Made by a program: the position numbers and the translations under genes. The notes under the pieces are model-generated. The model saw nothing but the letters and a program-made list of their open reading frames with translations. It was not told the origin of the DNA and searched no databases. 64,000 nucleotides of DNA from Eutreptiella sp. 'Long Island Sound 2002' (taxonomy: Eukaryota; Protista; Euglenida). Of this stretch, positions 8,905 through 24,816 are shown one piece after another. The stretch is from NCBI GenBank assembly GCA_964036045.1, contig OZ038378.1:64418001-64482000 (forward strand), in the 5' to 3' direction. How positions within the stretch are numbered: the stretch's first letter is position 1; each line of letters begins with the position of its first letter.

Positions 8905-11900
8905 CGCGCGACTGGGGAAGGGCCCGGATACTGATCCTGTGGCTGTCGCTTGCTAGATGGCTCTGGCTGATTGCAACTACGACATCAACGACAAGCGTGC
9001 ACATGCCTCAACGACGCCCCCTGTCTACCCTGGGATGGCCGAAGCAGTATGATCTGCAGACCCCCCCCCCCCCCCTGGGGGGGCCCGAGGATCCGGACCC
9101 TCAGCCCGGCAGGAGGGTGTCTCTACGCCCACAGCCCAGGAGTGCGCCCCGGGAGGAGGTGATGACCCTGGGTTTCCTCCGGGGGGTGCTAGCAGGATGG
9201 CTCTGGCTGGATGCGACTACGATATCGGCGGCAGGCGGCGTGCGAGTGCCCCAGCAGCGCCCCCCGTCAGCTTTGGGGTGGCCGAAGCAGTACGACGTGC
9301 AAGCCATGCTGCTGGGCCGTTGTGGGGATATTCATCCGAGGCCGGGACCCCTGCAGGTGGAGTCCGCGAATGTGACCTCTCTTCAGCGACAGTGGCGGCA
9401 GGTCATGACCTCCAAGGCCGACATAGTCTGCCTTCAAGAAACACGGCTTACCGCAGCGGGACAGAGAGCCATGGCCGCGCCGGCACGCAAAATGGGATGG
9501 TGCGCGCTTTGGGGCGCGCCGCTCGCTCATAACGGAGCGGGAGTATGGGACATAGGACCCGGCGGCGTGGGCATACTGTATCGCCCAGGCATGGTGATGC
9601 AGCTGGCGGCTCGCCCGGCGGATGATGAGGCCGTCGAGGCGCTGTGGGCGTCAGGGAGGTGGATGCATGCCCACCTGGCGCATGCGGAGGGCCGTAGCAT
9701 TCTCAACGTGCAAGTGGCCTATGGTATTGTGGCACAAAAACGCCCTAATGCCCAGCTATGGAAAACGGTGTTGCGCTACACGGCCAGGCTGGGGAATTCC
9801 CCGCAGATAATATGTGCAGACTTTAGTTTCCGACTCTCTGACGAGAACGACATGCCGAGGGAAATGTTCACAGCATTACGGAAGGGCCTGCTCGTGGATG
9901 TCATGAGGGCCCGTGCGGAGGCCCGGGGGCATCAGCCATGCACGACCTACCAGGGCGGCGCGGGCGCGGGAACCCGCATTGATGGGATCCTAACAGACCC
10001 CAGAGTGGCGTCCCTGGTGCACGAGGAGGGGGTAATTAAGAAGCCGGGGCTGCCGGGTCACTCTCTCTTGCGAGTGAGCATTACCCTGGACATGGCGAAC
10101 CAGAAGGTGACCAAGATCAGGAACCTGGAGGACCCTGAGGAGCATACCATGCACACGGAGGAGCGCCAACGGCTGGCCTCAATTTTCTGGGACAGTATGC
10201 GCAGACCCTGGAAAGCGGCGGTATGCGCCGAGGACGTCAATGGAATGTGGCACACGTGGACATGGGCGGCGGAAGAATTTTTGCTGATGGAGCTCGGGGA
10301 GGACAGCACCGTGGAGTCGGCGCTCCGCATGCATTGGCCGGGCCCCCCGGTGGTGATGGCCGACCCGATGGAGCCAGAAAAGCGGGGGCGGGGCACCTCG
10401 CATACGGTGGCCACTACCAAGCTTTGCCCTAATAAGAAACTGCCCAGCGGGGCGCCAAAGACCAGAGCCTTTTGGATCATGGACGCGGTCAAAGGAACGC
10501 TGAAGCAGGTACTGCGGTATGTTCGGGCGCACGAGCAAGCAGGCTTGAGAAGAGTGGGCGGGTGGCCCGGGGGGGTAGAGCAGTGCTGGCTCTGTGCGCA
10601 CAGGGGCATGGACCAACTGCAACAGGAGCGCCCCCCCCCCCCCCTGGAGGGGATTGTGGTGCCTTCGCGAGACAGACTATGCGATCCCCGGACGTTGGAG
10701 CCGCTCATAGCGGCCCTGGAAGCGGCGGTACGAGCGCGGGCGCTGCCGGAGGAGAGGGCGCGAGTGCAGGCCTGGAGACAGTGGATAGATCAGTCCTGGG
10801 CGACCTCGCCACGAGTGGTATATCGATGGATCAGAGGAGCGGGAGACACAGCCTTGCAAATGGTGCGAACCCCAAGCGGGGAGTTCACGGCAAACATTGC
10901 AGAAATGGATGAGGCCATCAGAGCGGCTTGGGCGCCAGTGAACAGATGCTATGAGACGAACCCGGAGCCCTCTGTGGACAAGTTCATGCAGGAATACAGG
11001 CACCATGTGCGACACAGTGCGATGAAGGCCAGAGTGCTCACGGGTGACGTACTGCTGCAGCGGGCACGCAAAATGGGGGTAAAAACGGCCAATGGCCTGG
11101 ACCTCTGGTCAATTAGCCTGCTTAAGCGCCTCCCGACGCCCGTCTGGGACGCGCTGGCGGAGCTCCTGCGCATGGTGGAGCGCACAGGGCAGTGGCCAGA
11201 CAGGGTGGCAGAAGGCTTCACGTCGCTGGTGCCCAAAGGAGAAGGGGGGGGCGACCCCATGAAGCTGCGGACCCTGACAGTTCTCTCGCAAATCTACCGT
11301 ATATGGGCAGGGGTCAGAATGGAGCACGCACTGCAATGGCACGAGCAGTGGATACACCCAGAGGCGTACGGATTCCGCCCCCACCGGGGGGCCATAGACG
11401 CGGCGACGGTCCTCACTCTTTTGGTGGAGCTGGCACAGGCGCTCAAGACGCCACTGGTGGGGCCAGGCACTAATTACACTAAGTGCTTCGACGTGATTCC
11501 GCAAGCCATCTCGATGGCCCTAATGGAAGCGCAGGGAATCGATGAAGCAGTCCTCCGAGCGTTCAGCGGCATGTAGCGGCAGCTGAGGTGCATGTTCAAG
11601 ATCAAGGGCTGCCTGGGGGTCTGGTGGGCAGCCACGAATGGGGTGCTGCAAGGGTGCCCGCTCAGTGTGATAGTTATCAATGCCCTCACGACCACGTGTA
11701 AGCGCATCATCGATGACGTAGGAAAGCCAGTGGCGGTCACCACAAAGGAGATGCCGCCCGCACCAAAAGAAGAGGAGATCCCCTGATGCTACTGGACCAG
11801 CTATGGAACCCGTCTAGATCATATATGGGTATGGAGGTGTGTGCAGCCCTGCTGCTGCTGGTAGCAAGGCTTGGTGGTGGATGGCGAGCACGCCCCGCCG

Positions 11901-14760
11901 CCGAACCCGGACAACGGGGGGGACGTGCAGCCGCCGAGACGACCGGATGGCTGCCGACCAGGGCTGCCCACGCCGGCCGAGAAAGTCTGGGGGCGTCTGG
12001 GCCTGCTGGCAATGCCCACTCCAGCTAGCATGGAGCACTCTAGGGCGTCGTTGCGGAGCCCCCCCCTGCGGGAGGACGAATTCGAGGTCTCCAGCGAGGA
12101 ACCGGCCTCCCCGATCTTGCCCATGAACCTTTTTGGCACAGACTCGCTGGACGGAGCAAGCGACAGCACGCACATGTCGGAGGAAGGATCAGTGGACGAA
12201 GAGGACGCGGCACCAGGATCACGGGCCACGATCTCAGCAGAAGGCTACGCGGAGGACACGTACATGCTTACAGCGTACCTCCTGTCCCATCTGGCGATGC
12301 TCGCGGCGACCAGCAAATGGCTGACGCTGACAGGGCAGGAGGTGAACGCCTCAAAGTCGCTGGCCTTCACAGCAGCGCACTCAGCGCGAGGGCCTCCCAC
12401 TGCGCTGGAGGCGACACTGGATGGAGTACGCATACCCACCCAGCAGGAGTTCAGGCAGCTGGGAGTGGGGGTGCGCACCGTGCCGCGACGTGGCACAGGC
12501 CCGCTGCTGCACAAACGCACCACGGAAGGGAAGGCAGCCCTCCGGAAAACCAGAACGATCCCAGGAGGCTTTGATAGAAAGGCCACGGTGGCGGCGGTAA
12601 TGATCGTGGCAGCGACGCTGTTTGGGGTCCAACTGGCGGATGTGGCCCCGAGGGACGTGAGCAGCTTGGAGTCGGGCGATCATGACGGCGATCTGGGGGC
12701 CCAGCAGACCGTGCAGGGCGAAGGAGGTGGTGTTTGCCCTACTGCTACCGGGGCATAGGGTGGCACCATCAATGGTGGTCCCGTACAAGCGGATGTGCTG
12801 GCTTGCGAACATCGCACGCATCCCGCGCACTGCCCAAGTTATCACACAAGCAATCTGGGAGCATACGGAGGAGCCCAAAGGCACGGGCCCACTCGGTTGG
12901 GCACTGCGAGAATTCCGGCGCCTCGGCTGGCGCAACCAGCGGGGGTGGTGGAGTTGGACCATGCCGCGAACCGGGTTCTCGGTGCACCTGGTGCACGCAG
13001 CCAAGGAGTATGTGGATCACCTGTTCCGAGAGTCTTTGAGGGAGCATCACGTGGAGGCACTAGAGAAACGGAGACCGAGACTCTTTGGCGGCATAGGAGC
13101 ACGGATCGACAGGGAGCTAACACTGAGCGAACTGGAGCACTGCGCCACGGAGCTAGACAGGTCGATGCTGCGAGGCGTGGCGGGGGCGATGTGGACCGCG
13201 GACAGAGCCCGTCCGAGAGGTCTGCGCCAGGATGGCACTTGCCCCTACTGTAGTAAGGGAACGCGAGAGGACGAAGACCACCTGCTATGGTGGTGTGCAG
13301 CCTGCAAGTCGGCACGGGAACCCTTCTTGCCGGAGGTCATGCTGCTGGCACGGGCCCTCAAGCTAGGGGCGCTGTCTAACTGGCCGCCTTGCCTGCGCCT
13401 GTGTGGACTGCTGTCAGAAGAGGTGGTGAAGCGAAGTGGCCTGGCGAGGGGGCCGGGCTGGAAGAAGCGCTGCAAGGAGCTGAACAGGGTCTTGAGACAC
13501 TGGGTGCCGGGGCCGGACGAAGACCCCGACGAGGCGTCAAGACAGCGGGAGGAGTTGGCCCTGGCAGGCCACCAGTGGGCACACGACGACCAGAACCCGC
13601 TGGAACAGTTTGTGCACCAGCTGCACTGCATGTTCCTGGCGGTAATGCGGGCCCGAAAGCAACGGGATGAGGAAGAATCCCTTCTATTTCCCGTGGAGCA
13701 GCGCAAAGCACCCCAGGAACAATATCCCTGGCACCAGCTTCAGCCCCCTCTCCCGCGGCCGACCAAAACATGCCTGCCAGCAAGGGGGCAGCTGCCCAGA
13801 GACTGGAAGTGGGGGCCGGACTTCCAACCGGCCGTACTGCGGTGGCTCTCAGAGCTACAATGGCTGCCAAGAGACGACAGCCTGCCCGAGGCACACCGGC
13901 AAGTGTCTTTCCTGGAACTGGCGCTGGACTTCGAATCGTACACAGGGAGACCTCTCCCCCCTACCCCCCAGACACGATTTAAGGGAGGGGAGCTGTCGCT
14001 GCAAGAGAAGGGAAGAGTCCTACGGCTTGCGCTATGTTTGCTGGGGAAGGCGGCGGGCAAGGAGTCCATTCTCCCGGCGGGCTTCACCAACAGGTGCCGC
14101 TCTCTGGTCCCGCTGGGGGCGGGCACCACGGCGGGGGTAAAAGGTAGGCCTATATTCACGCGCCCAGCGGCGGTCTGGCACCACCTGCGCCGTATGCAGC
14201 ACTACAGCGCGAAGAGATGGGCCCAACAGCAGCAAGCACAGGTGGCACGACAGCAGAGCAAACGCCGACGAGCACAGGGCCCGAAGGTGAAGTCGACACC
14301 GGCGCAGCAGCCCCAAGAAGTGAAGTGCCCGGGCAAGGGAGGAGCGAAGCGCTTGGCGGGGGCGTACGCCAGCGACTTCTACGCGGGCCCGGTGCTCCCA
14401 CCGGGGACGAGGCGAGGCCCACAGTACTGTGTCACAGAGGAGCCAGACTTCCGGCAGGAGCGGCACGCTGTGGCAGAACGGCGCTTTTCACCCCGCCGCA
14501 AAAGTGCGCGTTGGCGAGACGCCCTGAGCAGGGGCCGCGGCTGCCACGCCTTTGGGTCTGCGTGGCACACCAACACAGACAATGCGCATCCTGTGCAGCT
14601 GTGGGTCGGGGGGTGCGGCACTGCTGCGCCAAAGGACATGCCGGGCATCCACGACCGACAATGCGGGGCCGACAGCGGGGGACACGAAGAGCGGAGGCCC
14701 ACCCCCCTGGGGCGGGGGGCACACCGTTGGCGAAGAGACGCAGACGACAGCGGGGCCTAG
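8901..14760 (+). pseudogene. Non-LTR ORF2: apurinic-like endonuclease + reverse transcriptase + C-terminal zinc knuckle
   Basis: APE motifs SANVTSL, DIVCLQETRL, ICADF, TRIDGIL, GH. RT motifs KLRTLTVLSQIYRIWA, YGFRP, NYTKCFD, QGCPLS, YAED, LGV. Zinc motif CPYC-x6-EDHLLWWC (~13240-13305). In-frame stops at 11574, 11784 and ~11862; frameshift near 12675. Confidence 0.92.
9306..9350 (+). other. 2A-like (StopGo) peptide motif MLLGRCGDIHPRPGP
   Basis: Matches LLxxxGD(V/I)xxNPGP except N->R and lies immediately before the first APE strand (LQVESANV). Confidence 0.6.
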
Positions 14761-17895: not shown

Positions 17896-17963
17896 AACAC
17901 TAGTTGTGCCTCGTCTCAACTTTTGTTTGTGTCTCCAATGTTTAGGCAGTTTTCGTGTCTTTG
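17896..17963 (+). repeat. Split direct repeat A1
   Basis: AACACTAGTTGTGCC...TGTCTTTG; 2 mismatches vs A2. Confidence 0.92.
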
Positions 17964-17976
17964 TTTTTGTTAACCC

Positions 17977-18609
17977 ATGGACGGGGTTGAGCAGCCCAAT
18001 CACGCCCAGCACGTGCCAGCCGAGGAGCGACTGGCAGCACAGGCCAAAGAAATCCAAGAATTCAGAGAGCAACTAGCCCGAGTGGCAGTGAAGGAGGGGC
18101 CCCGCTTGCCCCCGTTGAGCGTGCCGGAAATCAACCGAGCCCTCGAGAAGCCCCAGTTGGCGCAGTGGATGAGGCTGATGCTGTCCAACATCAAGGCGTA
18201 CGTACGGCTTAGGGCCGGCGAGGTGGGGGAGATCCCCCGCCCGAGCGAGTTCGGCGGCCAAGCAACGGAGGCCGCGGTCGACCCAGGAGAACAACTGGCG
18301 TAGAGGGTCTGGGACTGCGTGTCCCAGTCCCAGGCGGCCTATGCCCGCAGGTATGCAGGGACACACGGCAAGTCCAGCTCCGAGTCCAGCCAGTACGCCA
18401 CGTTGGAGGAGGCATGGAAGGAGCAGGGGTCGGCATTCACATGGCGAAGCGTAAAGTTCAGGGAAGTGGGCGGAGTGCTGCAGTGGCAGTCGCGGCAAGG
18501 CGAATGGATCCCTGTGGATTCGCCGCCGAGTGGAGGGTGCCAGAGGTGCGCGCAGCGGGGCTCCCCCGACGAGCGCCACTGGCACTTTAGGTGCCCACAC
18601 TGGTCCTGA
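17977..18609 (+). pseudogene. YR-element gag-like ORF (210 codons, one premature TAG at 18301)
   Basis: ORFs 17977-18303 and 18319-18609 are in one frame. C-terminal C-x2-C-x9-H-x4-C finger (CQRCAQRGSPDERHWHFRC). Confidence 0.7.
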
Positions 18610-18744
18610 CAGGATCAGCTGGAGCCCGGACCGGCCGCCCCGGGCTCCGGCGTCACGGGCACAGCGGCGGGCCTGCGGGCGCTCGCCCGCAGGTGGGAGA
18701 CAGCAGCCAGGGCAGACGACCCCTGCTCACCGGAAGAAAGCACC

Positions 18745-19971
18745 ATGCAGTCGTGGAGGCCGAGAACCTGGTCGCAGTATGCGTCCCGGCTCCGGGCCTT
18801 GGCAGCTTACGTGGAGCGCGCGGGCCCGCTTGATCCAGCCGCGACACTGGCAGGCCTCCTGGTAGAGAGGGCGCAAGCCGGAGCTACAGCGTCAGCCCTG
18901 CGGGGTATTATTTCCGCGGTCCGGGCCGTGGAGGACCTCCAGTGGCTGCCCCCAACAGTCACAACCCTGCGCAAGAGGATCGCGGCGGGAGCCGCCTCGT
19001 CGGGCTCTCAGCCCTATCTGTCCCCAGCAAGCTTGGTCCAGCTGGTTGAGAAGGCCAGAGACTCCAGAAATGGAACGGTGTTCAGCGCGTTGGCGATCAT
19101 CAGCTGGGTATGCTACCTGCGGGTGGGCGAAGCAGCTGGCATCAGGGTTTCTGAATTGGCTATGCCAGGCGTTGTCCAGTTTTGGAACTCCAAGACAGGG
19201 GAGGAGGGGTACACCACCCGACCCCTGTACAGGTATGCGGACGGGGTCCGTGCGTGGCTTCATCGCCACATAGTCTCGTTGGGCCGGTCCTCAGACATGC
19301 TGGTCTGGCAGTCAGGGGAGGCGGGATTGGAGGCAGGCATGGCCGAAACCCTGGCGAGCACAGCGCACGCCCGCGCCAGGTGGCATGCGCTACGCAGGGG
19401 AGGCGCCGCAGCGACTTGGGCCCGCAAACCAGACCTCGCCTACTACAAATGGTGGGGCAGATGGCAGAGCACGGCCGTGGCGACGCAATACGGCACCGAG
19501 TGGTCCGACCCGGGTGTCGTGGCCCCTACGGTACTGCCTGCATGGTCCCGTGACCGAGGGCCTTTGCCGACTCCGGAGCGTGTGGGCGTCCTGGCGCTGT
19601 GGGGTTCACCAATGTTTCCCAGCATCGCGGGCGCCCTCAGCACCCCGACCAAGCGCAAGCCGAGGCGCCCACGGGGTGGGGGGCATGGGTCCACCAAGAG
19701 CGGCACAATTGGGAGCGGAGACGAGGGAGACCAGGCCGCGACCGAGCTGGAGGAGTCCGCCGAGGATGGCTCTGCTGAGGCGGGCCCGGGGCCTGAAGCG
19801 GCTCCTACCCCCCCTCCACTTCAACCTTTGGCCTCTGCCTCTAAGCGCGGCGCCGTGTCTCGGGAAGATGCGGGTCAGCTGTGCACGTTGGCGGGTCCTC
19901 TGGTTGCTGTGGGGGGGGGGGGGGGGGTGTGGGCCGGGGACGGCAGCCGGGCCCATCAATGTCGATTCTGA
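18745..19971 (+). CDS. Tyrosine recombinase (phage-integrase fold), uninterrupted ORF
   Basis: Catalytic set present: YLRVGEA (R), NSKT (K), HALRRGG (HxxR), GRW (W), TQYG (Y). N-terminal TWSQYASRLRAL helix. Confidence 0.9.
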   Translation: MQSWRPRTWSQYASRLRALAAYVERAGPLDPAATLAGLLVERAQAGATASALRGIISAVRAVEDLQWLPPTVTTLRKRIAAGAASSGSQPYLSPASLVQLVEKARDSRNGTVFSALAIISWVCYLRVGEAAGIRVSELAMPGVVQFWNSKTGEEGYTTRPLYRYADGVRAWLHRHIVSLGRSSDMLVWQSGEAGLEAGMAETLASTAHARARWHALRRGGAAATWARKPDLAYYKWWGRWQSTAVATQYGTEWSDPGVVAPTVLPAWSRDRGPLPTPERVGVLALWGSPMFPSIAGALSTPTKRKPRRPRGGGHGSTKSGTIGSGDEGDQAATELEESAEDGSAEAGPGPEAAPTPPPLQPLASASKRGAVSREDAGQLCTLAGPLVAVGGGGGVWAGDGSRAHQCRF

Positions 19972-22418
19972 CGTGGACACCGACGACGACAGCGAGGGTT
20001 CCGGAAGCGAACCCGATGGCGCCTTCGCAGTCGGCAGCGCCAGGGGTTCCCCCGGGCGTCGACAGGCCGGAGTTGCCAGGTTCATGGGACGCGAGCGTAA
20101 GCCGTGGTCCTCCAGGGCAGCCGCTGGTCCTGTCAGAGGAGGGACCGGGGCGGGCTCGAAAGCTGGAGTGGTGGGCCGTATCCACCGCTCAAACACGGGG
20201 CCGTGTCGCGCTAAGGTGGTCGTGGGTGGTGCGCAGGCCGGGCGACCCCGAGCCCCCGCACGCCGTCAAACTGGGAGACCTCGTTTGGCCCAGCAGATCC
20301 ATTCGCCGGCGCCCAAGCGCACCAAGCTCGGGGCAGGCGGGCATGTCCAGACGCCGGCGGCGCAAAGCCCGGTGGAGGGTGCCTTCGTGGCTGCAGCTGA
20401 GCGCCTCAAGGCCAAGGCTAGGGGGCGGGCGGGCCCAGTGGCGTCGCCCCCCCCCCCCCCCTCTGTAAGGGTCCAGACAGGGGCAAGAGGGTGCAGGAAC
20501 AGCCCCCCCTTTTCCTGGAGTTCATGCAAGCCCTCACCCCGCATTTCCACTGGATAGCGGAGCGGGAGCGTTGTGGCTTATGGATGGTGGCGAAAAGGGT
20601 GGATTTGTGGTTAAATAGGGTCTTCGATACAGCCGAGGATTTCCGCTTGCGGGGGGCTTTGCCCGCGCTCTTGAGCGCGTTGCGCGCGCTCCACCCGGAC
20701 TCATGGGAGGCATGTCTCCATGTCAATACCTCCCCCATTCCGCGGTTCATGGGGGGGGGTCGAGGATGCAATTTTGGACCGGGGTTTGGGACCGGTCGGC
20801 ACGCACCAGCTCCCTGCGGATCTGTGGGACGCTGTGGTCCCGCCCTTCTACCGCGAGGGGCTCCGGGATTTCGATGTCGAGCGGGAGTGGCAGGACGGGG
20901 AAAGGGTGGTCCGAGGGGCAACACGCTGGGTGTCCCAGCAGGTCCAGAGGATAGTCCAGGCGTTGCGGGGGGCGGGGGTTTACGAAGAGACAGCCGACCC
21001 CCCCCTCCCCCCACGTGTTACCCCTTCGTCATCGCCAAGTCCTCCGAGAAGGTATCCTTGATCTTGAGTTGCGTCAACATCAGCAAGAGTGACGGGGCCA
21101 AACCCCCCACTTTTAGATTGGATTCTTGGGAGGACTTGGCCAGGTCCTTGTCGGCATTCCCGCCTGATGTGGGCCTCTATGGGCTCCACATTGACCTCAA
21201 AAATGCATTTTGGAGCTTTTGCTTGCCGCAAGGGGCGCGCCAGATTTTTCGCTTCCGGCCCGCCCCCGGGGCCCCGCCTGTGGCGGTGTCACGCCTGCCC
21301 TTTGGCTGGAAATACAGCCCGTATTTGTGCCAAATGAGTTTGGCCCGCATTCTCCGGGGGGTGCTGCCCCCCGAGATACTCCTTGTGCACTATCTCGCTG
21401 ACTTCCCGCTCGTCTTCACTGATAGGGAGGTGCTCAGGGAAGCGGGGCGATCGGCTGTGCGCGCCCTGATCGAGGCTGGGTTCCTCATAAGTCCTAAGAG
21501 TGTCCTGGACCCGGTGCCTGTGGCATCTTTCCTGGGGAAGGAGCTTGACTTACAGGCCAGGCAGATCAAGAGCCACGAGCAGGCGCTACTCCAGTTGTGG
21601 GCGGGCTGGCTGAGATTGGCGGTTGGGACAGGCAATGACAGACACCTCCAAAGCTTCCTGGGTTTGCTGAATTGGCACGTACGCCCGCGGGGATTCGGTT
21701 GTCCCTTCGCGGCGGGTGCCTACTGCTGGCTGCGCTGGGGCAGAACGGTGGGAGGGGTCAAACAGCCGGCCCAGGGCTTTCCCCTGAAAATGCTGGAGAG
21801 CCTCGCAACATTGATGGCGGTGGCGGCCGAGCCCTGGCAGGCGCCGGGGGGGAGGCCTGGCGACAGTTGAAGACCCTCCAGTTTGGGAAGGAGGACAGGC
21901 TTACGTCCTCCTCTCTGTGGTACGGGGGTGTCATCGTCTGTGTCAATGGAGCGCGTGATGCAGGGTGCTGGAGGGTGGGAGCGCTTGTACCGGGAGTGGG
22001 TGTGCGTACGCATGTGACACCTCCAGCCCGCTTTGCCAGCTAGCAAACCACGGAGCTGAGGGGCTTGGCATGGGCTGTCAGGTTTGCTGTCAGGACAGGG
22101 CACAAGTCTGTAACGGTGTTTAGCGACAGTGAAGCCGCCATTGCTCAAGTGCTGCGACTGCGCGCGACTAGCCACCTGACCCACCACCAGGCGGTCCTAC
22201 GGTCGTTGGCTAGGGTCCTTTGGGTCTCGGGGATCGTGGTCCGCCTGGTGTGGGTACCCTTGGCACTGCAGCCGGGGGACCCTATGTCGAGGGTGACGCC
22301 GGTGTTCCGAGGTTCCCAGGCGAGGGCGGAGGTTGAGGCCTGGCGCACGTGGGATGCATTGCTGGATAATTTGGGCGAGGCTCGGGTGAGGGGGGTGGTA
22401 TGTCTACGGGGATACTAA
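19930..22418 (+). pseudogene. YR-element RT + RNase H (frameshifts mostly at G/C homopolymers)
   Basis: RT: PFVIAKSSEKVSLIL, HIDLKNAFWS, RLPFGWKYSP, YLAD (21391-21402), GFLISPKS, FLG, LQSFLGLLNW. RNase H: VCVNGA, TELRG, VFSDS, QPGDPMSR. Confidence 0.88.
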
Positions 22419-22461
22419 CCCCCCCCCCCCTCTCCCCCAAGCAGTCCAGCGGCGGCAGTGC

Positions 22462-23007
22462 GTGCGCCCTCCATGTAGCACCTTTTTTTCCGCACACATG
22501 CCCAAGAGTCGGGGCTCGCGTGGGCCCCGCAAGCGACGGGGTTCCCGTGGAGCCCACCGGAAGGGTCGCCATGGCGGACAGCGTCACCGGCGATCCGCGG
22601 AGGCCAAGCAGCGACGGGCGGCGAAGTGGACCACCGAGCTCCGCGGCCGCCTTCGCGGCAAGGTGGCGCACCTACCCATCCGCCGGGTGCTGCTCGGCAA
22701 CGGGGTGCGCCTGTGCCCCCAGTGCCCCCTCCCTGCCGACAGGGATGGGTTTTTGGAGCGAGCGGTCCGGGACGTGGCCGCACGCGTGGGAGGCACGCCG
22801 CACCGCCGCGTGACCCCCGACGGCCGCAGCGTTAAGCCCCCAGGGAAGCATGCATGCTGCGAGGTCTGGGAGGTGAGGCTGCCGGAGGGAGTCGCTGTGG
22901 TCTCCCTGGCGGACTGGAACAAGGGACACAGGGTTGCTGTGCCCTATATATGGATCCAAGGTGGGTACGGCTTGGTGGTGCGATTTGCCCGCCTCTTCAA
23001 TCCGTGA
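22462..23007 (+). CDS. Accessory ORF of the YR element, unknown function (Arg/Lys-rich N-terminus, CPQC and HACC motifs)
   Basis: Open 181-aa frame inside the element, directly after RNase H; likely start MPKSRGSRG at 22498. Confidence 0.45.
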   Translation: MRPPCSTFFSAHMPKSRGSRGPRKRRGSRGAHRKGRHGGQRHRRSAEAKQRRAAKWTTELRGRLRGKVAHLPIRRVLLGNGVRLCPQCPLPADRDGFLERAVRDVAARVGGTPHRRVTPDGRSVKPPGKHACCEVWEVRLPEGVAVVSLADWNKGHRVAVPYIWIQGGYGLVVRFARLFNP

Positions 23008-23348
23008 GACTCGGCGACTGTCGTGGTCGTCTGTTCCTCCCCGCTGTCGATGCTGCTGCTGCTGCTCCGCCTACTGCTGCTGCTCTCCCCTCCCTCCTCC
23101 CCCACCCTCAGCCAACCCCTGCGCTGCGGGTCCCTGCCCCCCCTGCTCCAGAGTGCCTCCCACCTACCCAACCCGTGTAGCACCAAGAGGGCAATGTTGG
23201 GGTCATTCCCCAACATCCGGCCCAACTCGGTGACCCCCAGGAGGTGCGTGCAGCCTCCCCCATCGCGCCACTCCACCTGCACCCCGTGTGGGTCGGCTCC
23301 AAACGTCTGCAGGCTCACAACCTAAGAAGGGAAACAAGAGGCAGGTGT

Positions 23349-23466
23349 GTTCTAGCGGCGTTCTAGCGAACTGTTCTAGCGACGTTCTACTTGCGTTCTA
23401 GCGGCGGCGGTGGCGGTCTGGCTAGATCAAAGCTAGAACGCTTCCGTAGATCAACGCTAGAACGCA
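23349..23466. repeat. Cluster of GTTCTAGCG motifs in direct and inverted orientation
   Basis: Four full direct copies plus one partial in 23349-23403; inverted copies at ~23432 and 23456-23466. Confidence 0.8.
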
Positions 23467-24427
23467 TTCAGCATACCGTGCCTTGCCTATCGAGGGCGGG
23501 GGAGATTGCCCCCGAGGCCTTGGTGAAGGCATTCCGGGGGTTGGGGGGATGCGGCTACGGGGTAGACCCGGTTGCGGGGGTTGTGGGGGGCTTGGCCTTG
23601 GGCTTGGGGCGGGAGGCGATGCCGTGCACCAATCCGACGGTTGGCCGGTTGGCGGCCGACGGGTCGAACTCCCGATACCCATGATCTCTGACCACGTTGG
23701 CGTCCACATCAACGTCCTCCCAACACACTCCATACCCCTAGTCCCATCGCCTGCCAGCAGTGGGCGATGAAACGCCAGTGCCCCGCCCCCCCCTTGTCGG
23801 GCGTGAAGACGTTGATTTGCGCCAACTCAAACATCTTCACCCCCTTTTCGGAGCGGGGGGGGGGGGGGGGGGGCGCTTCCCCCCTCTTCCTCCCGGGCAA
23901 CTCCACCACTAGGCCCCTGCAAACCCCCCACCCGCAGGGGTTTGTCCTCGTGGACCCCCCCCCCCCCTCGTCCGCCCACAACCACCTGCCCTGCCCCAAA
24001 ATTTTGTGATGCAAACGATGCATCAAAAAACAGAGAGTCCAAATCGGAGTCTCCGGGGGGACGAGGAGGGGGTGGACGAGGTTTGGGGGGTGGGGGGCGT
24101 CCAAGACGGCAGGGTCCCACGGCAGGTCCTGGATGGACCCCGCCTCCCTGGCCGCTCAAAAAAACCCTCAGCCCCTGCCCCGTCCGCACCGCCTTCTCCG
24201 CCACCACCTTCTCCTTCACCTTCTCCTCCACCGTCTCCTCCACGTCCACCTCCACCACCTCATCCACCACCTCCTCCTTCACCTTTGCCAGTGGGTGTCC
24301 CTGACGGCATGGGCGCCGGGTACTTTTATTTGTTTTTTGTAACTACCTCAGTTCGCAATCCTCAAGGGCTGAGGCTCGGTGATGGGTTCAGTGGCGCATG
24401 TGCTGTGTTCAGCGGAGAATGAATATT

Positions 24428-24532
24428 CAAGTCCTGTGCAGTTTTCTTGTGCTCTGCTTGTGCAAACACTAGTTGTGCCTCGTCTCAACTTTTGTTTGCG
24501 TCTCCAATGTTTAGGCAGTTTTCCTGTCTTTG
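24428..24532 (+). repeat. Split direct repeats B1/A2 (internal circle-junction copy overlapping at AACACT 24465-24470)
   Basis: B1 is identical to B2; A2 matches A1. Confidence 0.92.
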
Positions 24533-24773
24533 CCCGCCCACCCACCCACTGACCGGCTGACCCCCTGAGAGCACCTGCCCTTTCCTTTGCGTTTTGAAAC
24601 TGATCCCCTGGGGTTGAGTGGGGGATCTAACCGTGCTGCAGCGTGTGGGCCAGGGTATAGGGTCAGGGTCAGTATCAGAGTGGGGTCCCGCATCCAGCGG
24701 AGTGGTCCGCGACGCACCCGTCCATACAACCGCCGGTACACCCGGCCTTGGTGATACATCAGTACTGCCATCC

Positions 24774-24816
24774 CAAGTCCTGTGCAGTTTTCTTGTGCTC
24801 TGCTTGTGCAAACACT
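24774..24816 (+). repeat. Split direct repeat B2 (right terminus, ends in AACACT)
   Basis: CAAGTCCTGTGCAG...GTGCAAACACT is identical to 24428-24470. Confidence 0.92.

Follow-up and report, generated by a model that had tools for sequence, protein, structure and literature searches.

A recombinase-first DIRS-order retrotransposon family in the euglenid Eutreptiella, read from a decayed copy and its relatives

Structure of the element and its genes

The window, a 64,000-nucleotide stretch of contig OZ038378.1 from the genome assembly of the euglenid Eutreptiella sp. 'Long Island Sound 2002' (GCA_964036045.1), carries at 17,896 to 24,816 a retrotransposon in which a gene for a tyrosine recombinase (YR) lies upstream of those for reverse transcriptase (RT) and RNase H (Table 1). 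We consider it highly probable that this is an old, inactive copy of a DIRS-order retrotransposon abundant in its euglenid host, which inserted conservatively at a single C and decayed later, and whose family replicates in the manner proposed for Ngaro, PAT and VIPER elements. By searching the genome assembly (2.28 Gb, 2317 contigs) with a 26-mer of the A repeat we found 745 occurrences, with none for the control, and 50 matched places were scored in a search of the same genome with the element; on these counts the family is abundant, with hundreds of copies. Sister copies were ~97% identical and 5.67 kb long, and a second subfamily was ~89% identical with a longer 3' region. Comparison of copies shows a canonical unit of ~5.7 kb, made up of A1, open reading frame (ORF) 1, a TGA, ORF2 in the same frame, an overlapping ORF3, ORF4, the B1/A2 junction, a 241-bp spacer and B2.

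Table 1. Features of the element, in window coordinates.
Feature	Position	Strand	Details
Whole element as first bounded	17896..24816	+	6921 bp; repeat and end comparison
A1 repeat	17896..17963	+	68 bp; 66/68 identical to A2
ORF1, gag-like	17974..18606	+	211 aa in sister copies
Zinc-knuckle-like CX2C...H...C in ORF1	18538-18603	+	
TGA between ORF1 and ORF2, one reading frame	18607..18609	+	kept in 9/9 copies compared
ORF2, tyrosine recombinase (YR)	18610..19971	+	453 aa stop to stop; first ATG 18745
YR catalytic codons	R 19120, K 19192, H 19384, R 19393, W 19462, Y 19489	+	
RT piece of ORF3	20422..21867	+	Pfam RVT_1, 1e-9 to 1e-12
RNase H piece of ORF3	22044..22415	+	weak Pfam RVT_3
ORF4	22498..23007	+	169 aa, intact in window copy; basic N-terminus, conserved alpha+beta C-terminal domain
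Nested unrelated dispersed repeat	23043..24289	+	1247 bp; replaces 9 bp of sister copies
B1 repeat	24428..24470	+	43 bp; 43/43 identical to B2
Imperfect inverted repeat over B/A junction	24462..24499	+	arms 24462-24475 and 24486-24499; 12/14 complementary, 10-nt loop
A2 repeat	24465..24532	+	68 bp; overlap with B1 is AACACT at 24465-24470
Spacer between A2 and B2	24533..24773	+	241 bp
B2 repeat	24774..24816	+	43 bp, same sequence as B1

The initial annotation of this DNA had described termini of the form A1-ORFs-B1/A2-spacer-B2 with repeats of 68 and 43 bp, and had placed the hexamer AACACT at 17896, 24465 and 24811; alignment of the repeats confirmed both for the window copy. The hexamer forms the first six and the last six bases of the interval as well as the overlap of B1 with A2. 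Both differences between A1 and A2 are private changes of A1, as they also set it apart from the A1 repeats of sister copies, and within the family A and B are nearly invariant. The G+C content of the element was ~66%, against ~50% in its flanks. By the end rule of the family (see below) the element proper would extend from C17898 to C24813, and the AA at 17896-17897 and the ACT at 24814-24816 could equally be target bases.

ORF1 and ORF2 are parted by a single stop codon in the context TCC-TGA-CAG-GA, which was found in nine of nine copies from two subfamilies (the window copy, L003, L007, L008 and L015-L019); readthrough at this TGA, giving a gag-YR fusion, is possible. In the window copy ORF2 stops just past a run of 17 Gs (19911-19927), the longer form in sister copies being of ~600-616 aa, and forms of both 450 and ~600 aa occur among copies. 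ORF3 encodes RT, with the motif YLDD, together with RNase H, overlaps ORF2 in the canonical layout and is 875 aa long in copy L019. Scanning all ORFs against Pfam gave RVT_1 and a weak RVT_3 and nothing besides, with no methyltransferase match.

The residues, language-model features, profile matches and predicted fold of ORF2 agree in identifying it as a tyrosine recombinase. All six catalytic residues (R171, K195, H259, R262, W285 and Y294) were present and the catalytic domain was intact, as the initial annotation had reported along with the position of YR before RT, which also held, all genes lying on the plus strand. R, K, H-x-x-R, W and Y were invariant or nearly so in YR paralogues down to 25-30% identity. 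The language-model features of the protein lay beside the Phage_integrase and XerD clusters (0.97-0.98). When the PDB was searched with a YR profile, 16 of the 17 weak matches were tyrosine recombinases, with the LRVGEA box aligned to the Cre box containing R173, and a search of the PDB with the single sequence gave no match. Foldseek with a low-confidence model (pLDDT 59.6) returned tyrosine recombinases only (Cre at 1.5e-5, lambda Int, XerA, XerD and IntI).

ORF4 shared 47-50% identity with its positional counterpart in a family in which YR identity is no more than 27-30%. Such conservation, greater than that of the recombinase, speaks for ORF4 as a genuine fourth gene of these elements, one without known relative. 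A word-based homologue search with ORF4 gave matches within the same organism only, and neither Pfam nor the Atlas features gave any. With a predicted model (pLDDT 64.7, core 70-86) the best Foldseek E-value was 0.02 at a TM of 0.3, and the best VIA-align match, a KA1 domain at Z 7.0, lay inside the stated noise range.

Judged from its sequence, the window copy is a dead, ordinary member of its own family. Its gag-like ORF has a private TGG-to-TAG change at 18301-18303 (TGG in eight other copies), and its RT motif reads YLAD (21391-21402), which in the family is YLDD. A stretch near the start of RT is out of frame, with a frame switch at a run of 15 Cs (20447-20461), and the RNase H piece lies in another frame than RT, a stop separating it from its own N-terminal part. 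The nested repeat was absent from 15 sister copies; its own family has >1500 candidate places genome-wide at 76-86% identity, and one at 97-98%, outside YR elements. The window copy was ~3% diverged from its sisters. Of its description as a complete element, with the implication of an intact copy, the terminal architecture stands, but the body does not, carrying as it does the nested 1247-bp repeat, the private gag stop, YLAD and the RT/RNase H frame breaks. Runs of 12-19 Gs or Cs occur in the coding regions (19911-19927, 20447-20461, 22419-22430, 23855-23873 and 23955-23967), and the frames of different copies shift at the first two of these and at the C-rich 20997-21016; the homopolymer runs may be either slippage-prone sites or long-read homopolymer errors.

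Insertion junctions and empty sites

Junctions were compared over 12 independent full insertions, with two further left ends and one further single-B right end. At least 10 copies (L002, L004-L007, L009-L014 and L037, at 32.4-33.6 Mb of C12 and on small contigs) had identical flanks on both sides. By their flanks these are one insertion spread by large segmental or tandem duplication, and they were counted as one; the right junction of L052 was excluded. With the core written as AACACT, all left junctions read xxCACT and all right junctions AACxxx; in this notation each x (positions 1-2 of the left junction, 4-6 of the right one) is flank sequence, and the C at position 3 is the one base that the two have in common. 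In the window copy the ends overlap the junction by 6 nt, and in the other insertions by 4, 4, 3, 3, 2, 2, 2, 1, 1, 1 and 1 nt. Among the 12 inferred targets, A was found at position 1 in seven and at position 4 in seven. This suggested that a single C is essentially all that a target must offer, with A mildly favoured at core positions 1 and 4, and that the crossover point is C24467|A24468.

Paralogous empty sites were found for two of the insertions. For the window copy, the flanks joined with one AACACT match copies of a host repeat, GTAACACTGCC or GTAACCCTGCC; this had been claimed in the initial annotation and was borne out genome-wide, where the joined flanks gave 380 matches with at most 3 mismatches (control 0; best 25/26). 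Some of these host-repeat empty sites read AACACT and most AACCCT. The example originally cited for the match, at ~26519, proved to be a loose one only (AACCCA, ~68% identical across the junction), and the exact 33-mer of the joined flanks was absent from the 64-kb window. For the C12 family the paralogous empty site read GCAG-C-AATACTG at two places, with AGCAAT at the core positions. The two paralogous empty sites indicate a conservative insertion, with neither duplication nor loss of target bases. The target of the window copy happened to read AACACT, and hence the hexamer is seen three times there.

Atypical 3' ends, with a single B or an extra B, were observed in L018, L054 and L052, some of which consist of A1, the body and B, without A2, spacer and B2, and still stop at the same C. 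The single-B copies may have arisen when a circle with one junction integrated, or by a deletion from B1 to B2.

Affinities and mode of integration

The combination of RT, RNase H and YR, the lack of any other Pfam domain in the ORFs and the absence of a target-site duplication at the two paralogous empty sites are as expected of the DIRS order. Within this order the succession gag-YR-RT/RNase H without methyltransferase defines VIPER-like elements, and YR retrotransposons with the recombinase before the polymerase had been reported only from kinetoplastids (PMC6681497, PMC3783388); here they are abundant and diversified in a euglenid. The split direct repeats, shown for VIPER and TATE in 2019 (Ribeiro et al., PMC6681497), are found in the window family too, and its likeness to VIPER and TATE extends to the zinc-knuckle-like gag motif (present in some members), to box II of the recombinase (x-[IL]-[RK]-[RK]-G-[GA]) and to the euglenozoan host. 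It departs from the VIPER-like elements, which have three ORFs only and a distribution confined to Kinetoplastida, in having ORF4 after RNase H and a euglenid host. Further differences are its repeats of 68 and 43 bp (173 and 219 bp in T. cruzi VIPER), its A2-B2 spacer, its gag and YR in one frame with a single TGA between them, and the fifth YR catalytic position, which is W in the window family and H in VIPER and TATE.

Other groups of the order were compared in the same way. The Ngaro and PAT elements (Goodwin & Poulter 2004; Poulter & Goodwin 2005), among them the Ngaros of Cafeteria (PMC8547959), are alike in split direct repeats, the circle-junction model, a GC-rich body of 5-7 kb, a GRWxS...Y recombinase box and the lack of a target-site duplication; their YR lies downstream of RT/RNase H, with a methyltransferase in PAT, whereas in the window family YR comes before RT and no methyltransferase was seen. 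Ngaro was ruled out by this order, and DIRS-like elements in the strict sense and PAT-like elements by the lack of a methyltransferase match and by terminal repeats that are direct and split, not inverted. DIRS-1 of Dictyostelium (Cappello 1985; PMC7192593) is also a YR retrotransposon with a short sequence shared by circle junction and target, of which one copy per partner flanks the element. Its terminal repeats are inverted, and it carries a methyltransferase domain as well as an internal complementary region, in contrast to the split direct repeats of the window family and to its shared sequence, which is one C.

The likeness to VIPER and TATE is one of architecture; the short YR motifs, compared by eye, are ambiguous. 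It is quite possible, though we lean the other way, that the family belongs with Ngaro, PAT and DIRS or forms a separate deep YR lineage, in which case its gag-YR-RT order arose independently and the likeness is convergent. The last catalytic box of the family, WGRWxS...Y, is as in Ngaro (MGRWxS..YIR) and Crypton, and VIPER has KHxD..RYLG and TATE GHxx..RYLG at this place; the conserved fourth ORF has no counterpart in VIPER/TATE (PMC6681497). Named relatives were likewise missing from the word-based searches with YR, RT/RNase H and ORF4, which gave matches from the ENA assembly of the same organism only, and looking up the clusters of 10 representative YR matches gave no informative names. 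A hidden Markov model search of 1.84 billion representatives with YR gave 1127 matches, with none named among the best 150 of the 1127. Against convergence, box II (WHALRRGGAA) resembles that of VIPER (HSIKRGAL) and of TATE (PSIRKGAL), the family agrees with VIPER-like elements in its gene order, in its split direct repeats and in having no methyltransferase, and host and kinetoplastids fall within one phylum. The gene order recurs in relatives, both in diverged elements of the host itself and in sequences from an SRA assembly and a JGI metagenome, and those from the SRA and JGI data (recombinase 29-34% identical to the window YR) show that the clade is wider than the host genome.

The A1...B1A2...B2 geometry and the circle-junction model that goes with it were known before from Ngaro, PAT and VIPER-like elements (PMC6681497, PMC7192593). 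On this model a full-length RNA of the window family would be reverse transcribed, the internal B1/A2 junction would template the joining of B2 to A1, and the recombinase that the element encodes would then carry out, at the B/A junction, a crossover between the circle so formed and the chromosome. For DIRS elements, Poulter and Goodwin (cited in PMC7192593) had proposed that circle junction and target have a short stretch of sequence in common. Several points weigh against an old, decayed copy that entered by conservative insertion at one C and replicated in this way. The replication cycle is carried over from other families, and in Dictyostelium the detectable DIRS-1 cDNA is linear and single-stranded (PMC7192593). 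The Pfam scan did not recognise the YR, the junctions come from a small sample, with 12 full sites read among hundreds of copies, and several of the frame breaks, lying at runs of 12-19 Gs or Cs, could be assembly errors and not mutations.

A different substrate for the recombinase may be considered from the inverted repeat over the B/A junction. This contains AAC-ACTA-GTT, its left arm is formed only by the joining of B to A, and the crossover C24467|A24468 adjoins a CT/TT bubble. As single-stranded DNA the 105-nt B/A junction folded better than shuffled sequences (z of -2.9 for the plus and -2.4 for the minus strand), and the 49-nt junction core alone folded no better than its shuffles. The recombination site might accordingly be this hairpin, present only at B/A, and not a duplex att core; the YR would act on folded single-stranded cDNA and exchange one strand with a nearly arbitrary target bearing a C, with replication resolving the junction. 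We regard this as unlikely. If true, it would explain a sharp junction with almost no need for homology, and would tie in with the single-stranded cDNA of DIRS-1 (PMC7192593). Integron attC sites and CTX phage with XerCD are alike in a hairpin-forming site, a crossover beside an unpaired bubble, AAC/GTT triplets and a sharp crossover with almost no homology to the partner; this is a resemblance only, and the proteins are not close relatives.

The initial annotation had proposed that a circular cDNA with a B/A junction integrates by YR crossover at a 6-bp core, AACACT, and had named the YR a candidate site-specific integrase. The class of element, the gene order and conservative insertion without target-site duplication are supported, but we hold a fixed att core, required in circle and target alike, to be very improbable. 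The 6-mer does occur at both ends and at the B1/A2 junction of the window copy and once in its paralogous empty site, and over the 12 sites the targets matched the core at 24 of 60 non-C positions (five per site), somewhat above chance (binomial p 0.007). Without the window copy, which had been chosen for its own 6-mer, the match was 19 of 55 (p 0.07). Eleven other independent insertions share only 1-4 nt, largely against the expectation that all copies end in AACACT, and the empty site of the C12 family does not have the hexamer. Moreover, positions 1-2 of the left junction and 4-6 of the right one were target sequence in every case, which a 6-bp overlap with segregation of heteroduplex would not yield. 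With only the C at position 3 constant over the 12 inferred targets, and a target requirement of little beyond one C, neither the fixed core nor the site-specific integrase was upheld.

We give as little credence to integration of a linear cDNA by host repair, through microhomology-mediated end joining and not by the YR. The microhomology at the junctions is short and variable (1-6 nt), as end joining would have it, but in every copy read both ends lay at exactly the same nucleotide, the two empty sites showed neither loss nor gain of bases, and conservation of the YR catalytic residues in deep paralogues implies selection. That the split repeats are an assembly artefact, a concern raised in the initial annotation and one for which only the general risk of a repeat-rich 2.3-Gb long-read assembly speaks, can be dismissed with near certainty, as >15 copies, spread over different chromosomes, have the A1...B1A2...B2 layout, and an independent assembly of the same organism (ENA ERZ25074135) holds the insertion of the window copy between the same flanks.

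With ends, empty sites and a putative crossover that can be read to the nucleotide, the family offers a natural data set on target choice by YR retrotransposons, in which one C would suffice, and the same data set suits the question of whether the junction hairpin is the recombination site.

Host genome and further copies

The host is, on its sequence markers, a euglenozoan and not a kinetoplastid. A spliced-leader 24-mer identical to one printed in papers on Euglena gracilis and E. longa had 5,458 occurrences in the genome at no more than 1 mismatch, with none for the reversed control, and the small subunit ribosomal RNA genes were ~2.2 kb long, with a moderate match to the eukaryotic model. 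The spliced-leader 24-mers (for example C1:29492-29515) were scattered on both strands along the chromosomes and not limited to a few tandem arrays. A literature search gave no description of recombinase-first YR retrotransposons in Euglena; for Euglena gracilis only DAM-carrying DIRS-like elements were mentioned (10.64898/2026.05.21.726589).

Several copies showed features of their own. In the 89% subfamily (L016, L017, L019 and L052) the 3' untranslated region contained one to three repeats of a ~184-bp segment of the YR ORF (element positions 1851-2034). The diverged clade member L038, whose YR is 27-30% identical, lies within a long array of an 85-bp satellite (L038:5389-5722 and 11027-13000). 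Beside the copy at L037, a neighbouring gene (L037:12194-13794) was found by Pfam to encode a fusion of an ammonium-transporter and a guanylate-cyclase domain. At L039:10621-12087, adjoining a further YR element, we observed an ORF with an aspartic-protease match and the NPPF motif typical of N6-adenine methyltransferases, in keeping with the retrotransposons with DAM that have been reported from Euglena gracilis (10.64898/2026.05.21.726589).

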